Shown: in pieces, positions 2,451-34,148 of the stretch
Layout of the letters: every line of letters starts with the position of its first letter
Position numbering within the stretch: position 1 is the first letter of the stretch
Source: Hyaloraphidium curvatum SAG 235-1
Taxonomy: Eukaryota; Fungi; Monoblepharomycota
Reading direction: 5' to 3'
DNA: 64,000 nt
Assembly: GCA_025558095.1 (NCBI GenBank)
Contig: JAIVFI010000009.1
Location: forward strand, 310,001-374,000
Program-made: the position numbers and the translations under genes
The notes under the pieces: generated by a model
What the model saw: only the letters and a program-made list of their open reading frames with translations
Database searches by the model: none
Told to the model about the DNA's origin: nothing

Positions 2451-5380
<2,930 letters not shown>

Positions 5381-5393
5381 CCGCGCCCTCGCA

Positions 5394-7394
5394 CTACACA
5401 AGCCGCGACTTGATGTCGGCTGAAGCTCGGATTATGTCCTCCGGAGCTACCGCCGAAGGATCCTTCAGCGACTTAATGATGCGTTTTTGCTGGGCTTGGA
5501 GGAGCTTGAGCAGATCAGGGTCGACATGGCCATCGACCGAGGAGACGTGCGATAGAATTTTGGGCACGAAGCGACCCGAAGCGAGCAGGGGCTTTGTAGT
5601 CGCCCTCTGGAAAAGCAACAGAGCGGCGATGTGGAGCACGAGCGCGGGATCTTCCGCATCGTTCAGCTGTCTCTTCAGATCCGCCTCGACGTTCGCGAGC
5701 ACCGACCCCTCCGCATCGGGTCGCATACCGCCGTCGCCAAGGAGCTGGCTGCGAAGCGCCTTGAGCGCTTCCTGGTCGCCTTCCGCGATGGCTCGTCGAA
5801 GGTTGTCCGCCACCTCCGTCAGACCTGCTTCCTTCAACGACGCCGCAACCTTCTGCATGATGGGCGATTCCGACAAGACGACGAGCAGTGCAGCTCGTGT
5901 AGGCTCGTCGCGGAGCAGCATGGCTCCAGAGGCGTACATGTCCAGCTGAGTAAACGATCCCACGACCTCGGGGCTCGCGATTGCCGGCGCGCCGTCGCTG
6001 TTCCCGTGCACAACCGAGAGCGATCGAGAGGCCTCAACCGCCGCCTGCTCCAGAGCCGGCAGAAGGTGCTCCACAATGTCGTTAAGCAAGAGAACTGGCA
6101 CGGCGGGATAGAGTCCGTGCGCTGCTTCGTCCACCTGCTCCTGCTTGAGCATTTTGCCCGTGTCGGGCTTGGCTCTGCCGCCCTTTCCGCGCTGCGCGGC
6201 CCCCTTTTGCTGGCCAATCTTCGTCGCAAAGGGCTTCAAGCCTTCCGCGATCTGAGCGAGCAGCCTCGGATCCACAAGAAAGCTCCCGAGCCTCCGTCTC
6301 GATCCCAGCTTGGGGTCGCTTCCGCTCCACAGTTTTGCCAAGACGGGTTCTCGCTCGTCGGCGTCGTCCAGGACAAAAGGGCAGACTAGTGTAAGGTCGA
6401 CCCACCCCTTCTCCTCCAATGATTCATCCACTTCAGCTTGCATCCTGTCGACGAATGCCGAAGTAACGAGCGCGTTGGCCAGCATCGTCAGCTTGGCGTC
6501 CCCTGCCGCAAGGCGTTTGGCGTAATCGTGTGCCATGTAGATTGCCGACGCTTGCGGGGCTCGCAACATGTTCTGGTACTCAAGGTAGCCGATTGCTTCC
6601 AGATCGGCCACCACAGATGACTGCAGACTGGAAACCCAACGTTCCGGCACCCAAAACCCGCGGGCTACGGTGCCACCGGGTAGACCCCTCAGTTGTGCGT
6701 CGAACGCGGCTTTGGCCACGACCAAGCCTCGCTCCTCCAAACTCGATTGGAGCGCCGAAACAGCTATCGGGGTGTTCGCGTCCGACGTCAGCTGCTCGAG
6801 CAGGCGCGCCTGCTGGCCGAGTCCCGCGGCGGTGGCAATAAGTGTCTGGTCGCTTGGGTCGAGGCGCCCTACTGGAGCATCACCATCGTCCTCGGTCCCA
6901 GGCTTAAAGATGAGCCTCCCGAACAGGTCCGAAAGCGCGGAGGGTGCCAAGGTCGTGGACCGAAGGAACAGTCCGCGCGCTTGCAGCTTCTGCACGAGCT
7001 CCCCAAGCCTGAAATTGTTTGGATCCTCCTCCAGCATGTGCCTCAGCTCCTTCCGGACATTCGAAATCCAACTCGAGGACGCGACGCCGCCGGTCGAAAC
7101 GACGATCGACGGGGCGAGGGGTCCGGAGACCAGCCTGCGCAGAACCCGCTCGGAAACGCGCGTTACCGCCTCCAGCTCCTTCCAGGATGCCACACCTCGC
7201 GCATCGCGCGGCCGTGGCGCGTCTGACGCGTCGCGGATGCCCAAGTAGTTCTTCAGATCCGTCGCGAGGCATCCCACGGTGACCAGCCCCGATCCATCGA
7301 CTGTTTCAAGGAGCTGCCGCGGATCCGAAAGCGGTGCATTCGGTGGCGGCGACGCCGAGGCTAGGAGAAAGCTGGCGAGCGCGTCTTGGGCCAT
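5394..7394 (-). CDS. UFL1: E3 UFM1-protein ligase 1 (UFL1)-like, divergent
   Basis: 666-aa ORF; C-terminal LKRQLNDAEDPALVLHIAALLLFQ..LLASGRFVPKIL resembles the UFL1 C-terminus; N-terminal LLETVDGSGLVT resembles the UFL1 N-terminal motif. Confidence 0.7.
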   Translation of the reverse strand: MAQDALASFLLASASPPPNAPLSDPRQLLETVDGSGLVTVGCLATDLKNYLGIRDASDAPRPRDARGVASWKELEAVTRVSERVLRRLVSGPLAPSIVVSTGGVASSSWISNVRKELRHMLEEDPNNFRLGELVQKLQARGLFLRSTTLAPSALSDLFGRLIFKPGTEDDGDAPVGRLDPSDQTLIATAAGLGQQARLLEQLTSDANTPIAVSALQSSLEERGLVVAKAAFDAQLRGLPGGTVARGFWVPERWVSSLQSSVVADLEAIGYLEYQNMLRAPQASAIYMAHDYAKRLAAGDAKLTMLANALVTSAFVDRMQAEVDESLEEKGWVDLTLVCPFVLDDADEREPVLAKLWSGSDPKLGSRRRLGSFLVDPRLLAQIAEGLKPFATKIGQQKGAAQRGKGGRAKPDTGKMLKQEQVDEAAHGLYPAVPVLLLNDIVEHLLPALEQAAVEASRSLSVVHGNSDGAPAIASPEVVGSFTQLDMYASGAMLLRDEPTRAALLVVLSESPIMQKVAASLKEAGLTEVADNLRRAIAEGDQEALKALRSQLLGDGGMRPDAEGSVLANVEADLKRQLNDAEDPALVLHIAALLLFQRATTKPLLASGRFVPKILSHVSSVDGHVDPDLLKLLQAQQKRIIKSLKDPSAVAPEDIIRASADIKSRLV

Positions 7395-26576: not shown

Positions 26577-26709
26577 GGTTTGCTGGGAATTGTGGGCAGA
26601 GTTCTGAGATAGAAGTTGGCCGCTCCTCATAATATGTGTGTTTTAAATGTCACGTTAGATCACCCATGTCACCCCGCGCGCGCGCCTAACCCGGCTATCA
26701 AAAATACGG

Positions 26710-26785
26710 GTGACTTTCCCAAACTATACTGCCGGCTGGCAGAGGTGACTTTCCAGAGCTATACCGTATAGCTCCGAAAAGTCAC
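26710..26785. promoter_or_regulatory. three copies of a ~20-bp motif GTGACTTTYCnnRnCTATAC (two direct, one inverted); candidate recombinase-binding array, mirrored near 31139-31215
   Basis: 26710-26729 gtgactttcccaaactatac; 26745-26764 gtgactttccagagctatac; 26766-26785 reverse complement gtgacttttcggagctatac. Function is inferred. Confidence 0.55.
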
Positions 26786-27672
26786 GCGGCAGTTCACCTC
26801 ATAGGCCGACAAGGTCGGCGACCCCGTGCGCGTCCCACTCTCCGCCCGGCCGCGCGCCGGCCCGCGCAGCGTCGCAGCAAGTACCGCCGCACGTGCCGGT
26901 GGGCGCGGCGGACGCGCTCGGCTGGGGACCTTGTGTGTGAGCGGCACCCCGGGCCTCGAGGGGCCCTGCGGTGTTCCTCGTGGAATGCCCCTCGCCGAGC
27001 TCGGCTGGCTCGGCGGCAACTTTGGCTACGCCGTTTTCTACGGGGATGCCGGGCCCATTGTTTCCTGGAGCTGTTTGTGGAGCCGGGCCGTGGACCTTCG
27101 CGGTGGCGGCGAGTCCGAGGCACTTCCTCGGCTTCGCATGCCTATTTGGAGGCAGGCGTCGCCGCATGCATCTCGCGAGGAACATATTCTCTAGGATTGC
27201 GCGGCTGGATCCGCCCTTGGAGGCCGCTGTACGGGGTTCGCTGCCGGTCCCCGCCGCGGCCCTGGATGTCGGCCCCCACGCTCTCCGCTGGGCGAGGACT
27301 GGCCAGGGAATCAGGGGTAGCAGACCTTCATGGTGCTGGCCAATGCCGTTGGCTAGAAGGATCGCGGCTCCGAGGTTCCTGGCGACAGCTGGGGCACTTT
27401 CGTTGTTTCGGACGCGTTGCTCCCTCACCCCTGGCCGTTACCTCCGACAAGCCAAGATTGGACCTTTGAGAAAGTTCGGCAATCAAAAGAAGCATTGCCC
27501 TCTTGTTTGCCAGAGGTCCTACAGGCCGCAACCCTGTTGCGTACGGGGGGACCCGCACGGGCGCGTATCAGCTTCTTTGCATCTGCCAGAACGCGGCTGC
27601 CGGGGTAACGGGGCCGGGATATGGGTATTTGAAGATGGATAATAGAACGAATTGCGTTCCGATGGACGCTTC

Positions 27673-28767
27673 CTACATGCCCGGCCCCTTCCACGCCGCC
27701 AGCACGCGCCCCGCGAACCTCTCCTTCCCCTCCCGCTCAGTCAGGTACTTGACGGCCTTTGCAACATTGCGAGCAAGCGAGGAGGCATCCAGGTACCCTC
27801 GCTGAACCCCTTTTGGCGCGATGATCAATGTCCTTTCCTCGCTCCCGTAGGACACCGAGCAAGAATGCCGGCGACGACCCATGACGCACTTCCTGAGGGT
27901 CTTGCTCCCCGTCAAGCTTGGTCAGGTAAGGCGCAAGAATCGCAGCTTGCTCGGCCTCGGGCTCGTGGATCACAAGCTCGGGCGGTGCGCGCTTCGTTCC
28001 GTGGTACTCCCGGCCGGCGAGCTCACCCGACTCCACCGCCTCGCGAACCTCTCCTCCAGGGAACCGAGCTCGGAAGCGGGTCCCAAAGGGTGAGAACCTG
28101 GACTGACCGATGTTGCGCGTTGATCTCTGCTTCGCCGAGTCGGCAGTACGTGCGGCAATCTTGTCGGGCGGAGGTGGGTGCCTTCGGGGTCAGAGACTGC
28201 GCTGACATCGCTGTCACCCTGCAGATGCACTCACAGAGGAGCGCTCAGTGTGCGCCGTTAGGGCTCCTAGTACGAGGAACATGTAGGCCATGTTGGAAGT
28301 TGGATTCAAGGGCCCGTGCACAAGTCCTTGAAACTCGACGCTGGCAAAGTTCTTGCCCATGCGATTCAGCTCCTCCACGTCCGCCAGGATGAAAGCAGCG
28401 TTCCTGCCGAGCCTATCAACCCGGGCAACGGCCAGGCCCACGATCGTTGCGTCGTGAGAGAGCCTCCTGAATGCTTCCTCAAGTCCGGGCCGCTGCTTCC
28501 TCCCGTCACCACGCGGGTAGGTGCCGCTGAGAACGTCGCTGTAGACAACTACTATCTTCCCTCTACTATCTCCCTCTTGTTGTCTGTCGCCCAGCGCCGC
28601 ACCAGTCCCTCCTGGTCCTGCAGCGAGATGTTGTTCACATTGTCGTCCTTCGACTTGCGCACGTATGCGATCCAGCGCCCATCCCTCGGCCGAGGATTCG
28701 CGAGGGCCACCAACGACTCCAGCGCCTCTTCGACTGCCTTCAGCGCCGGCTTTTCCCGGGCGGCCAT
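27673..28767 (-). pseudogene. serine recombinase, left copy, frameshifted; predicted intron 28160-28234
   Basis: Mirror of the right copy; 14-bp imperfect duplication at 28549-28562 and one extra base in the T run at 27811-27814 break the frame. Confidence 0.8.
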
Positions 28768-28987
28768 GACCGGCAGCCCCTCCAATGGCAAGTGATTCGT
28801 GCTCGGAGCGGAGTGGTCCCGACGTGACTTTTCCGCCGGCAGCTGCCCCGCGGAGAGTCCCACGGTTCCAGTGCCCCACGAGGCGATGGCGACGGCTCAG
28901 GAGAGCCGCGTTAAGGCCTCTAACTGGCCGTCACGAGGTCGCGAGTGAGAGACCTGCTCGGGTGACAGTCACACAAACTCGGCCAAT

Positions 28988-31290
28988 TCTCTCACTCGCG
29001 ACCTCGTGACGGCCAGTTAGAGGCCTTAACGCGGCTCTCCTGAGCCGTCGCCATCGCCTCGTGGGGCACTGGAACCGTGGGACTCTCCGCGGGGCAGCTG
29101 CCGGCGGAAAAGTCACGTCGGGACCACTCCGCTCCGAGCACGAATCACTTGCCATTGGAGGGGCTGCCGGTCATGGCCGCCCGGGAAAAGCCGGCGCTGA
29201 AGGCAGTCGAAGAGGCGCTGGAGTCGTTGGTGGCCCTCGCGAATCCTCGGCCGAGGGATGGGCGCTGGATCGCATACGTGCGCAAGTCGAAGGACGACAA
29301 TGTGAACAACATCTCGCTGCAGGACCAGGAGGGACTGGTGCGGCGCTGGGCGACAGACAACAAGAGGGAGATAGTAGCTGTCTACAGCGACGTTCTCAGC
29401 GGCACCTACCCGCGTGGTGACGGGAGGAAGCAGCGGCCCGGACTTGAGGAAGCATTCAGGAGGCTCTCTCACGACGCAACGATCGTGGGCCTGGCCGTTG
29501 CCCGGGTTGATAGGCTCGGCAGGAACGCTGCTTTCATCCTGGCGGACGTGGAGGAGCTGAATCGCATGGGCAAGAACTTTGCCAGCGTCGAGTTTCAAGG
29601 ACTTGTGCACGGGCCCTTGAATCCAACTTCCAACATGGCCTACATGTTCCTCGTACTAGGAGCCCTAACGGCGCACACTGAGCGCTCCTCTGTGAGTGCA
29701 TCTGCAGGGTGACAGCGATGTCAGCGCAGTCTCTGACCCCGAAGGCACCCACCTCCGCCCGACAAGATTGCCGCACGTACTGCCGACTCGGCGAAGCAGA
29801 GATCAACGCGCAACATCGGCCAGTCCAGGTCTTCCCCCTTCGGGACCCGCTTTCGAGCTCGGTTCCCTGGAGGAGAGGTTCGCGAGGCGGTGGAGTCGGG
29901 TGAGCTTGTCGGCCGGAGTACCACGGAACGAAGCGCGCACCGCTCGACCTTGTGATCCACGAGCCCGAGGCCGAGCAAGCTGCGATTCTTGCACCGTACC
30001 TGACCAAGCTTGACGGGGAGCCAGACCCTCAGGAAGTGCGTCACGGGCCGTCGCCGTCATTCTTGCTCGGTGTCCTGCGGGAGCGAGGAAAGGACATTGA
30101 TCATCGCGCCAAAGGGGTTCAACGAGGGTACCTGGATGCCTCCTCGCTTGCTCGCAATGTTGCAAAGGCCGTGAAGTACCTGACAGAGCGGGAGGGGAAG
30201 GAGAGGTTCGCGGGGCGCGTGCTGGCGGCGTGGAAGGGGTCGGGCATGTAGGAAGCGTCCAGCGGAACGCAATTCGTTCTATTCTCCATCTTCAAACACG
30301 ATATCCCGGCCCCGTTACCCCGACAGTCGCGTTCTGGCAGATGCAGAGAAGCTGATACGCGCATGGGCGGGTTCGCCGTATGCAACAGGGTTGAGGCCTG
30401 TGGGACCTCTGGCAAACAAGAGGGCAATGCTTCCTTTGATTGCCGAATTTTCTCAGTGGTCCAATCTTGGCTTATCGGAGGTAACAGCCAGGTGTGAAGG
30501 AGCAACGCTTCCGAATCAAAGAAAGTGCCCCAACTGTCGCCAGGAACCTCGGAGCCGCGATCCTTCTAGCCAACGGCATTGGCCAGCACCATGAAGGTCT
30601 GCTACCCCTGATTCCCTGGCCAGTCCTCGCCCAGCGGAGAGCGTGGGGGCCGACATCCAGGGCCGCGGCGGGGACCGGCAGCGAACCCCGTACAGCGGCC
30701 TCCAAGGGCGGATCCAGCCGCGCAATCCTAGAGAATATGTTCCTCACGAGATGCATGCGGCGCCGTCTGCCTCCAAATAGGCATGCGAAGCCGAGGAAGT
30801 GCCTCGGACTCGCAGCCGCCGCGAAGGTCCACGACCCGGCTCCACAAACAGCTCCAGGAAACAATGGGCCCGGCATCCCCGTAGAAAATGGCGTAGCCAA
30901 AGTTGTCGCTGAGCCAGCCGAGCTCGGCGAGGGGCATTCCACGAGGAACACCGCGGGGCCCTTCGAGACCCGGCAGGTGCCGCTCACACACAAGGTCCCC
31001 GGCCGAGCGCGTCCGCCGGGCCCACCGGCACGTGCGGCGGTACTTGCTGCGACGCTGCGCGGGCCGGCGCGCGGCCGGGCGGAGAGTGGGACGCGCACGG
31101 GGTCGCCGACCTTGCCGGCCTATGAGGTGAACTGCCGCGTGACTTTTCGGAGCTATACGGTATAGCTCTGGAAAGTCACCTCTGCCAGCCGGCAGTATAG
31201 TTTGGGAAAGTCACCCGAATTTTTGATAGGCGGGTTAGACACGCGCGTGGGGTGACTTGGGTGATCTAACGTGACATTTAAAACACACAT
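28988..31290. repeat. right arm of long inverted repeat
   Basis: Reverse complement of 26634-28952. Confidence 0.97.
29173..30251 (+). CDS. serine recombinase (resolvase/invertase-type catalytic domain plus C-terminal extension), right copy; predicted intron 29692-29766; one apparent 1-bp frameshift near 29915
   Basis: IAYVRKS (Ser39), SLQDQ, VYSDVLSG, RPGL, VARVDRLGRN; splicing GTGAGT...AAG gives ERSS|IAARTADSAKQRSTRNIGQSRSSPFG, then LVIHEPEAEQ. Confidence 0.85.
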
Positions 31291-31321
31291 GGCCGCGCGC
31301 GGCTGAGGACGAAGAATCGCA

Positions 31322-34148
31322 ATGGCCTCCGCGCTCAGTCGCGTTAGCGCGATTGCGATGGAGGCGTCGCGAGAGCTTCGTGCGGCTCGCGGAGCGCCGC
31401 GGCCGGGAGGGGAGGCGGCCGAGCTCCGCCAGCTGCTGGACTCTCGGTGGGCAACCCCGCCGACTGAGGGGTAGAACGCGCTCTGACGCGTCTTGCAGCT
31501 TCGAGGCCGAGAAGCTAGATGCTATGAAACGCCTGGTCAACGTGGGCACGTGGACGCCGCGCGTCGGCGACGTGGATCTGCTGACGCGTCTGGCTGGGGA
31601 ACGCGCTTCCAGCTCATGAGCCGGGGCCGCGATTGCGCCGAGTTCTTCCCGGCAGTGGTGAAGAACGTGGCTTCGCCATCGGCAGAGGTCCGTCGCCTCG
31701 TCAGGATCTTCATTCAGCGATACGCGGAGCGGGAGCCGGACATTGCGCTTCTCTCTGTCAACAGCTTCCAGGTGACCATTCGTGCCTGGGAAACTGTCCT
31801 GATCATTGGATAACAGTCGAGCAACGTGTTTTACAGAAAGACTTGACGGACAAGAACCCCACCATGAGGGCCACAGCTCTGCGCGCCATGTCTTCCATCA
31901 AAGGTTCGCCGAGGGACCGGGCGCAGCACAGTCCAGCCCTGAAACCGCCTTCATTGCAGTTCCCGTCATTGTCCCGATCGTCATGCTGGCCATCAAGAAG
32001 GCCCTCACGGACCTATCGCCGTACGTGCGAAAGGCAGCGGCCGCAGCCGTCGCCAAATGCCACGGGTTGGTGGTTCCGTGCCTGGGAACGAACATCCAAT
32101 AACGGGGTTTTCAGGCTCGACTCTAGCCAGGAGGAGTCTCTTGTTGAGCTACTGGTACAATGCCTCGGCGACCTGTCCCCAATTGTCGTCGGGACCGCTG
32201 TGGCATCCTTCAACTCCGTGTGCCCGGACAAGATGGAACTCCTGCACAAGCTTTACCGACGGTACTGCAAGATGCTGCTCGACGTGGACGAGTGGGGCCA
32301 ATTGGAAATGCTGGACGCCCTCCATCGCTACGGTGCGTTTCCTCTTGTCTGTGTCCGTCTACGTTCTCAGACCGTCATTTCAGTGCGGTCCAACTTCTCG
32401 GATCCCGCTGCCGCGGCGACGGAGGACGTCGACATCACCCTCCTGCTGAACTCCACCGCGGTCCTCTTTCTCTCCCGCAACCCCGCCGTCGTTCTCCGGG
32501 CGGTTGCTCTCTACACCGACCTCGCGCCTCAGGCAAAATGGACAAAGGTCGTTCCGCCACTCCTACGGCTGGCAAAAGCCGAACGGGAGCAGCAGTTCCT
32601 GGCTCTGCGCGCCATCCTCTCCCTCGCGTTCCGCGCCCCGGGCCTGTTTTCCGATCGCCTGCGCCATTTCGTCGTGTTCCCCCTGGAGAACCGGCCCGTG
32701 CGGGACCTGAAGCTGCGAATCATGGTCGCGGCGGCTTCCGAGGCCAACGTGGCGGACGTGTGGAGGGAGCTGCAAGCCTACATGAGGAGCCCTGAGAGGG
32801 AGCTTGTCCTCGCTGCCGTCAAAGCGGTCGGGGATCTGGCTGCGAAGCTGCCCGACATGGCCGAGATCTTTGCCAACGGGCTCATGGGGTTGATATCCAA
32901 GCGAAACGGTGGGTTGCGCCATTCGGACGTACCTTCGGCAGCTCATTCCGGGTTCGGTCCAGAGAGCCTGCTGCCGGACATTCTGCTCACCCTGCGCGTG
33001 CTACTCCAGCTCAAACCTTCGGCCCCGTCGATTGCGCGGCTCACGAAGCTTTTGGATCTTGTTTCTTCGCCCACCGCCAAGACCAGCATCCTGTGGCTGG
33101 TCGGTGAGTACTGCGCGCTCATCCCCGACGTCGCGCCCGACGTCGTACGACGGTGTGCGAAGGAGTTCAAGGAGCTGGAAGGCCTGGAGAACGTGGGGTT
33201 GAAGCTACAGATCTTGACGGCGGCGTGCAAAGTGTACGTCGAGCTCGCACGGCCAGAGGAAGGCGCGACGGCCGGGAAACGGCTGGAGGGTGCCGCGGCA
33301 GGGCGAATGGAGGCGATCCTCCGCTATCTGCTGGAGATGGCGCGGTTTGATATGGACTACGACGTGCGGGATCGTGCGAGATTCCTGCGCGCCTTGGTTT
33401 TGGAGGGCGAGGGAACGGAAGCTCTGCGTAGGGGGGCGCGGGACGTGCTGATCGGGAAGAAGAAGGTCGGCTCAAGAATCGACGCTGACGGTGAGTTCCG
33501 CATTTCAGGTTCCCACCGCCCAGCACTTACGTCGCCGGCCGTGCAGCACATTTGGACTTTCCGCTCTCGACCCTTTCCCACCTCCTAGGCCATGCCGTTC
33601 GGGGCTACCGGCCATTGCCGGACTGGTCGGCAAGTCCGACGGATCCCTCTGTACGCACCGTTGAGGGCGACGACCCATGGACGAGGACAATGGCGCCATC
33701 TCCGGTCGCGGACCGCACCAGCCGGATGGGAAGTCCCGTGCGGCCGTCGTCGGCTGTACGGAATACGCCGCCTCCCACCGTTAAGGTGAAGAAGAGGGTC
33801 GTGAACCTGGACAACTGGTTCGATGAGAGCGCATCTGACGACGATGCCGCGGAGGGAGCGGAGCAAGAGGGAAGCGGCGAGGAAAGCGGGGAAGATAACG
33901 ATGCCGGTGGGACGGGAGAGGAGGAAACTGAGGAAGAAAGCGGCGAGGAGAGCGGTGACGAAGCGTCGTCGGATGAGGACGACGCGGATGCCGCAAAGTC
34001 GCTGCGATCGCGACAGGATGCTGCCCAGGACGGCGCGGAACCGATCGCGAACCTGTCGGCCACCACGGCACGCGGTCCCGAGGAAACCGTGGACGATACG
34101 GACGAGGAGGACGAGGCAGTGCCGATACGGCAGGGGAGCAAATCATGA
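31322..34148 (+). CDS. APL6: AP-3 adaptor complex beta subunit
   Basis: [72 protein letters not shown]; acidic tail. Confidence 0.93.

Follow-up and report, generated by a model that had tools for sequence, protein, structure and literature searches.

Serine recombinases are considered to belong essentially to prokaryotes and phages. The large serine recombinases, such as Bxb1, PhiC31, TP901-1 and the LI integrase, carry an α/β recombinase domain starting with P-[FY]-G, and use a zinc ribbon and a coiled coil for att-site discrimination and directionality. Among eukaryotic DNA transposons, IS607EU is the only one known to encode a serine recombinase, according to a 2026 review (PMC13565253). 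Here we describe a different kind of locus, a serine recombinase gene of the chytrid-grade fungus Hyaloraphidium curvatum SAG 235-1, found in a 64,000-nucleotide stretch of contig JAIVFI010000009.1 (C9:310001-374000, hereafter the window; GCA_025558095.1, an assembly of 31.9 Mb in 55 contigs). We consider it likely that the gene, at 29173–30251 on the + strand of the window, is a decayed copy of an H. curvatum transposon-borne, intron-bearing serine recombinase gene, the 3′-most gene of a Crypton-like element of 5.7 kb. Comparisons between copies and homologues, given below, establish the enzyme class, the intact set of catalytic residues, the gene structure, purifying selection and residence in a transposon. 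We refer to this gene and its copies as family A, and to a second set of recombinase genes in the same genome as family B.

The first exon (29173–29691, + strand, 173 aa) encodes the catalytic domain and the first part of helix E. It matches the Pfam Resolvase N-terminal domain PF00239 (E 1.5e-15) over profile positions 2–125 of 145, and the match therefore stops within helix E, exactly where the open reading frame (ORF) is interrupted. The ATG at 29173, the motifs YVRKS, SLQDQ, DVLSG, RPGL and DRLGRN, and the end at ERSS (29691), all listed in an earlier reading of the window (the original prediction), can be read directly. The Y-x-R-x-S and D-R-x-x-R motifs of the PF00239 superfamily are both present, and the residues Y35, R37, S39, D113, R114 and R117 are invariant over 12 family members. 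A profile of the family aligned to the solved catalytic domains of 3GUV (1.6e-17), Gin (5e-16) and TP901-1 (3.6e-14), with the alignment running through helix E and, for 3GUV and Gin, passing the segment AEvERiNirkRT. Substitutions between copies fall at codon positions 1, 2 and 3 in the numbers 6, 6 and 28 for exon 1 and 6, 7 and 19 for exon 2, and on these counts the third-position bias indicates purifying selection on both exons. A word-indexed protein search with exon 1 returned just four matches, all from the same species.

Exon 1 is followed by a phase-0 intron of 75 nt (29692–29766, + strand) with a GTGAGT donor (29692–29697), a CTGAC branch site (29733–29737) and an AAG acceptor (29764–29766). 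These signals had been placed correctly, as had a nearer AAG at 29742–29744. Exon 2 (29767–30251, + strand) encodes the end of helix E and a recombinase-domain-like DNA-binding domain, with a 1-nt deletion near 29914/29915 according to the alignment of copies. Without splicing, the frame meets a TGA stop at 29710–29712. In the C22 paralogue, the same interruption is 74 nt long and the frame of exon 2 is kept only upon its removal. The intron differs by 16–18% between C22 and the other copies, against 3.5–8% for the exons. At the homologous phase-0 site of family B (FEREQ/VRERTK, the slash marking the junction), there is an unrelated piece of 55 nt, GCGAGC...TTTTAG, with GC-AG ends, and the environmental contig L041 (60% GC) has 67 nt, GTAAGC...CTACAG, at the same position. 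The genes of Chytridium lagenaria, Amoeboaphelidium and several metagenomic ORFs are uninterrupted, so that AE.ER.N...RTK....R..GQS.YSPYGT.F reads across the junction, and these intronless homologues are collinear with ERSS/IAARTADSAKQR...GQSR.SPFGTRF. In a tree of the family, families A and B and contig L041 cluster together (support 87/67), a grouping consistent with one intron gain.

The choice of the acceptor at 29766 over that at 29744, made in the original prediction on protein homology, is favored by the frame and by the spacing to the branch site: the nearer AG lies 8 nt from the branch-site A and would break the frame, and the first AG beyond it is that of the AAG at 29766. The public gene models P0002–P0004 use this same splice junction. 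The interruption has the GT/GC-AG ends, the branch-like motif and the joined frame on removal of a spliceosomal U2-type intron, at 75 nt compared with about 57–65 nt for the short introns of the host, two of which we read in the adaptin gene. The comparative evidence argues strongly that the 75-nt interruption is a real spliceosomal intron and, as had been proposed, that the gene is adapted to eukaryotic expression. Intron gain in this gene family appears not to be confined to Hyaloraphidium, since the family genes of Obelidium and Rhizoclosmatium are interrupted at different positions. The break in the Obelidium recombinase follows ...APGQSE.

The expected product of splicing, running from ERSS to ELVIHEPEAEQ in a protein of 334 aa, holds for its junction and its length. 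However, exon 2 of the window lacks one nucleotide and fails to reach ELVIHEPEAEQ, both copies in the window are broken, and the 334-aa protein is intact solely in the C22 paralogue, the only intact copy of family A (L027: exon 1 4615–5133, intron 5134–5207, exon 2 5208–5690; 173 aa plus 161 aa). We modeled the full-length fold on a public family B protein from the same genome, P0005 (12-sequence alignment, predicted local distance difference test score (pLDDT) of 77). In this model a single helix, residues 162–196, continues over the exon junction. The model matched TP901-1 (Z 17.7), γδ resolvase (Z 14.8) and the catalytic fold of ISC1926 TnpA (Z 16.5), and 251 residues could be aligned to the catalytic-plus-recombinase-domain part of Bxb1 (Z 16.2). 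The resolvase fold with a long helix E is therefore found, as a prediction, in this same-genome paralogue.

The exon 2 product of family A was folded alone, using the C22 sequence as reference (9 sequences, AlphaFold2, pLDDT 79), and compared with 48,161 representative PDB chains. The top six matches were all large serine recombinases (PhiC31, Bxb1, another serine integrase and the LI integrase; Z 4.2–6.0, the next match being at 3.3), all of them matching in the region of the helix E end and the recombinase domain. A profile comparison (hhalign) with the recombinase domain PF07508 aligned the first 28 columns alone, the stretch from helix E to PFG (E 3.5e-4), and a PDB sequence profile search with the C-terminal alignment gave nothing. 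The exon 2 products of families A and B are collinear and 32% identical. The structural ranking lends support to the proposal that exon 2 would continue helix E and then begin a recombinase domain; of the structural check suggested for it, the search that placed large serine recombinases in the top six positions agreed with it, and Foldseek gave no match for the exon 2 model.

The C-terminal part comprises 161 aa of mixed β and α structure. No zinc ribbon (PF13408) or Cys cluster is present in it, no coiled-coil domain was found in the enzyme, and the protein ends about 160 aa past the helix E junction. Among the nearest prokaryote-like matches (n = 47), 27 have PF07508, five have a zinc ribbon and none has HTH_7. 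On these models and comparisons, the enzyme would share with the large serine recombinases a catalytic domain, a helix E and a recombinase-like domain that starts with P-[FY]-G, in the same order, while their zinc-ribbon/coiled-coil domain is missing. We rejected full membership of the large serine recombinases on account of this missing domain and the length of 334 aa compared with 400–700 aa. A small resolvase or invertase was rejected as well, as there is no HTH_7 match and the C-terminal part is 161 aa of mixed β/α structure instead of a helix-turn-helix (HTH) of about 45 aa. The gene further differs from those of the large serine recombinases in being nuclear, intron-bearing and borne by a fungal transposon.

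The TnpA of IS607 and IS607EU is likewise a serine recombinase, in IS607EU that of a eukaryotic mobile element, and the catalytic fold matches ISC1926 TnpA as noted above. In contrast, IS607 enzymes have an N-terminal MerR-like domain and a TnpB/Fanzor partner, whereas the family A enzyme has its catalytic domain from residue 33 onwards and its DNA-binding part at the C terminus, with no TnpB-like ORF beside the gene. An IS607-type TnpA was thus rejected: only 32 residues precede the catalytic domain, there is no TnpB-type Pfam match and the sequence past the stop codon is non-coding.

An exhaustive profile search separated a distinct top group of sequences. Its named members are all zoosporic fungi, from Hyaloraphidium, Quaeritorhiza, Chytridium lagenaria, Obelidium, Phlyctochytrium, Rhizoclosmatium and the aphelid Amoeboaphelidium, and the remainder are metagenome contigs. 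For a maximum-likelihood tree, prokaryote-like rows were included if their match covered 125 profile positions or more, as was the case for 29 of 134; two of these 29 turned out to be chytrid. The 16 family rows form one clade (support 99/95), separate from the 27 prokaryote-like rows, and the named members of this clade are, on the sequences sampled, restricted to chytrids or an aphelid. No viral vector is evident, because viral contigs yielded just distant phage-type relatives of at most 34% identity. The family proteins have been deposited under automatic names, either 'Resolvase' or 'hypothetical protein', and full-text searches of the literature found no paper that connects serine recombinases to Cryptons or to chytrids. 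The enzyme family is apparently undescribed.

We then compared the element that carries the gene to known transposons. The full family A element spans about L027 1017–6739 (5.7 kb) and contains a tyrosine recombinase, a GCR1_C domain and, as its 3′ gene, the serine recombinase. The C22 ORF has an atlas feature score of 0.96 to the NDC10_II, DUF3435, DUF3504 and Phage_integrase clusters, and eight of the ten best matches in the atlas search belong to the tyrosine recombinase/Crypton-derived clan. HxxR, HGW and Y motifs can be read in the ORF at L027 2590–2952, and the GCR1_C domain follows the tyrosine recombinase ORFs (Pfam E 7e-10). This pairing of tyrosine recombinase and GCR1_C is the signature of CryptonF (Kojima and Jurka 2011, PMC3212892), and the C22 element has it. 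The two also share the lack of terminal inverted repeats, none of which was found in the C22 element. However, none of the described Cryptons has a serine recombinase, the word 'serine' being absent from PMC3212892, and the definable ends of the C22 element, of which the 5′ end is defined from two copies only, showed no 6-bp terminal direct repeats of the kind typical for CryptonF.

Past the recombinase gene, the element continues with a non-coding 3′ part (30252–31292, + strand) in which substitutions lack codon periodicity. All copies share the 3′ terminus ...AAAACACACAT (31292 in the window), and four copies diverge right past ...CACACAT. Within this 3′ part, an imperfect palindrome of 41 bp (31139–31179, strandless; mirrored at 26745–26785), with two 20-nt arms that are 90% complementary, is conserved in all copies, 113–153 nt from the 3′ end of the element. 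The arm motif AAAGTCAC occurs four times in the element; two occurrences are additional to those in the 41-bp arms, and one of these lies upstream of the recombinase ATG. The 41-bp palindrome is the best candidate for a recombinase binding or crossover site in family A.

The recombinase occurs in other elements too. Family B, whose catalytic domain is 35–38% identical to that of family A, consists of four copies of an 8.2-kb element with 96.5–99.96% mutual identity (C4:366968-375135, L025/L029; also C34, C46 and C9:~535.6–544.0 kb). All four recombinase copies are intact, with the GC-AG intron, and two independent insertions have perfect 7-bp target duplications, GGTCCGG and CGTGGGC. Family B is probably a currently active transposon, because of its near-identical copies, perfect target duplications and intact recombinase. 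Its large ORFs have no Pfam match, a 386-aa ORF found no match in the word-indexed protein search, and other ORFs give weak Mutator/ISL3-like leads; the DDE assignment follows from weak atlas leads (0.81–0.86) and the 7-bp target duplications alone. When A, B and other chytrid loci were compared by tblastx and blastp, A and B had a single gene in common, the serine recombinase, and no common sequence was detectable between their 3′ regions. At two loci in Obelidium and one in Rhizoclosmatium (L035 2858–9123, L046 4062–11136, L045 5060–11192), the recombinase is preceded, in the same orientation, by a conserved gene that encodes about 1,100 aa and has no Pfam domain. This pair seems to represent a third architecture. 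With different partners in A, B and Obelidium/Rhizoclosmatium, the recombinase is associated with several distinct primary transposition machineries.

Some further motifs were seen around these genes. A zinc-finger-like motif, C-x2-C ... H ... C-[DR]-DG, lies just upstream of the family B recombinase (L025 7007–7399), and it recurs in the N-terminal extension (~140–175) of the Chytridium lagenaria model P0014 and in the upstream gene of Obelidium (L035 5829–6776). Beside the Chytridium lagenaria recombinase (L034 3299–6346), there are ORFs resembling a DDE-type transposase (ILDN..H) and a C48/Ulp1-like peptidase; this recombinase, too, sits in a transposon-rich stretch.

The combination of a primary transposase with a separate serine recombinase gene recalls the logic of the Tn3 family, and the 7-bp target duplications of family B add to this likeness. 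Tn3 elements are bacterial, with a resolvase that has a small C-terminal HTH and a known res site, whereas here the primary enzyme is a tyrosine recombinase (A) or an enzyme that forms target duplications (B), and the crossover site is a candidate only. We tentatively suggest that zoosporic fungi may hold their own clade of short enzymes resembling large serine recombinases, as a portable module in at least three unrelated transposon architectures: Crypton, a probable DDE element forming target duplications, and the 1,100-aa architecture of Chytridiales.

The two family A copies in the window are arranged as a near-perfect palindrome of 4.66 kb (26632–31292, strandless), in which two 5′-truncated 3′ parts of the element lie head to head as inverted repeats of 90–99% identity. 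The right arm (28956–31292, + strand) corresponds to L027 4397–6739 of the full C22 element at 95% identity, as found by BLAST of that element against the window and by alignment. The left arm (26632–28953, − strand), delimited by the inverted repeat, alignment and BLAST, is the mirror copy, cut 34 nt deeper into the element, and two filler bases (28954–28955) join the arms. Alignment with the C22, C2 and C14 paralogues indicates that both arms are 3′ portions, 2.3 kb each, of a longer element. The base missing near 29914/29915 from the gene on the + strand is present in the mirror copy, C22 and C2. The mirror gene (27673–28767, − strand; ATG 28767, stop 27673; exon 1 28767–28235, intron 28234–28160, exon 2 28159–27673) has other lesions: 14 nt of exon 1 are duplicated in tandem, and exon 2 contains an insertion of 1 nt. 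Both copies in the window are thus frameshifted pseudogenes. P0001, the public model of the + strand copy, joins ERSS directly to YHGTKRAP and has a further skip later; it apparently steps around the frameshift and is an annotation artefact over a pseudogene. A small palindrome, GTGAC-A-GTCAC, lies at the arm junction (28962–28972), a few bases off the true center of symmetry. It is element sequence of the right arm, found in C2 too, and the C22 version reads GTGACAGTTAC.

The identity between the arms is mosaic. The inner 0.8 kb (28990–29800 and its mirror) are about 100% identical and the outward part (29800–31180 and its mirror) 94–97%, with the outer left arm diverging 1.7–2.1% from C22 compared with 3–6% from the right arm. 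This pattern suggests gene conversion near the palindrome center, or two different source copies, and speaks for conversion between the arms of a real and old structure as opposed to an assembly fold-back. The pseudogene state of the window copies, and a palindrome shaped like long-read fold-back chimeras, could be taken to mean that the interruption is a degenerate insert in a dead gene, or that the locus stems from bacterial contamination or from an artefactual fold-back in the assembly. We regard this as very improbable: three lineages carry different intron sequences at one site, with canonical ends and the exon frames preserved, and intact copies need their removal; moreover, the arms differ by 0–6% in a mosaic and have unique flanks with eukaryotic genes. 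Bacterial contamination was rejected on the 849-kb contig that hosts the gene, the eukaryotic neighbor genes and the several copies of the recombinase gene in the H. curvatum genome. The ORFs around it encode an adaptin N-terminal region, UFL1, DNA polymerase phi and a DEAD-box helicase, and the deposited proteins identical or near-identical to those of the window are from H. curvatum. The claim that the gene is no bacterial contaminant is thus borne out by its flanking genes and its multi-copy status.

The main rival reading is that the 2.34-kb piece (28956–31292) is an autonomous serine-recombinase-only element that lodges in or next to other transposons, namely the Crypton in C22 and C2 and the target-duplicating element in family B, with the recombinase as its sole transposase. 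The recombinase is the only gene common to A and B and is at the extreme 3′ end of both, followed by about 1.1 kb of non-coding sequence; both arms in the window start within 34 nt of the same point, in intergenic sequence a short way 5′ of the recombinase gene, and C22 and C2 show a cluster of base differences just 5′ of this point. We nevertheless find this reading unlikely. A complete module standing alone between unrelated flanks was not found elsewhere, other copies being randomly truncated fragments, and the junction between Crypton and recombinase is the same in C22 and C2. A single inverted-duplication event accounts for both arms, and the 3′ regions of A and B have no detectable sequence in common.

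With three of the four family A copies broken, the recombinase might also be a passenger, an old horizontally acquired bacterial gene without function for the transposons. Neither Cryptons nor DDE-type elements require a serine recombinase, and composite Cryptons with foreign genes are known (PMC3212892). However, the strong third-codon-position bias in both exons, the catalytic residues that are invariant over a clade of several chytrid orders and an aphelid, the four intact copies of family B, and the conserved pair of a large gene and the recombinase in Obelidium and Rhizoclosmatium speak against a passenger, which we hold to be quite improbable.

We return to a transposon-borne gene of a Crypton-like element as the likely explanation, against which some observations weigh. 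The structural match of exon 2 to the recombinase domain is just Z 4–6, and this domain is too diverged for Pfam and Foldseek: Pfam gave no match on exon 2, either for the window pieces or for the whole exon from C22 and family B, and Foldseek of the exon 2 model against the PDB gave none at E below 0.001. The presence of the recombinase in the unrelated, target-duplicating element B unties it from the Crypton machinery, and its role may be accessory, or it may have none. Family A may also be extinct, since just one intact copy (C22) exists.

On this reading, the gene, prokaryotic in type, has been fully 'eukaryotised', with one phase-0 intron inside helix E. In the mechanism that we propose, dimers of its enzyme would bind sites inside the element or at its ends, the 41-bp palindrome being the best candidate, and the dimer-bound sites would synapse as a tetramer, with all four strands cut through phosphoserine links formed by the putative nucleophile Ser39. 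Subunit rotation and religation would follow, and the recombination may serve the element in resolution, or in excision/integration, beside the primary recombinase. Should zoosporic fungi indeed hold a clade of such enzymes as a portable module, as tentatively suggested above, this would be the first Tn3-like logic of a transposase plus serine recombinase in eukaryotes and the first eukaryotic mobile-element system with a serine recombinase other than IS607, and it would provide natural serine recombinases already suited to the eukaryotic nucleus. The finding bears on how composite recombination machineries are assembled in eukaryotic transposons and on ancient gene flow from bacteria to fungi, and could be a source of compact serine recombinases for which expression and activity in eukaryotic nuclei are native.

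Finally, we considered the insertion site. Rfam and tRNA scans of the whole window were empty. Only about 30 nt separate the right end of the palindrome (31292) from the ATG (31322) of a downstream β-adaptin-like gene, the first introns of which are at ~31772–31836 and ~31904–31959. The insertion thus sits in the promoter or 5′ untranslated region of this gene, because the palindrome ends so close to its start codon.

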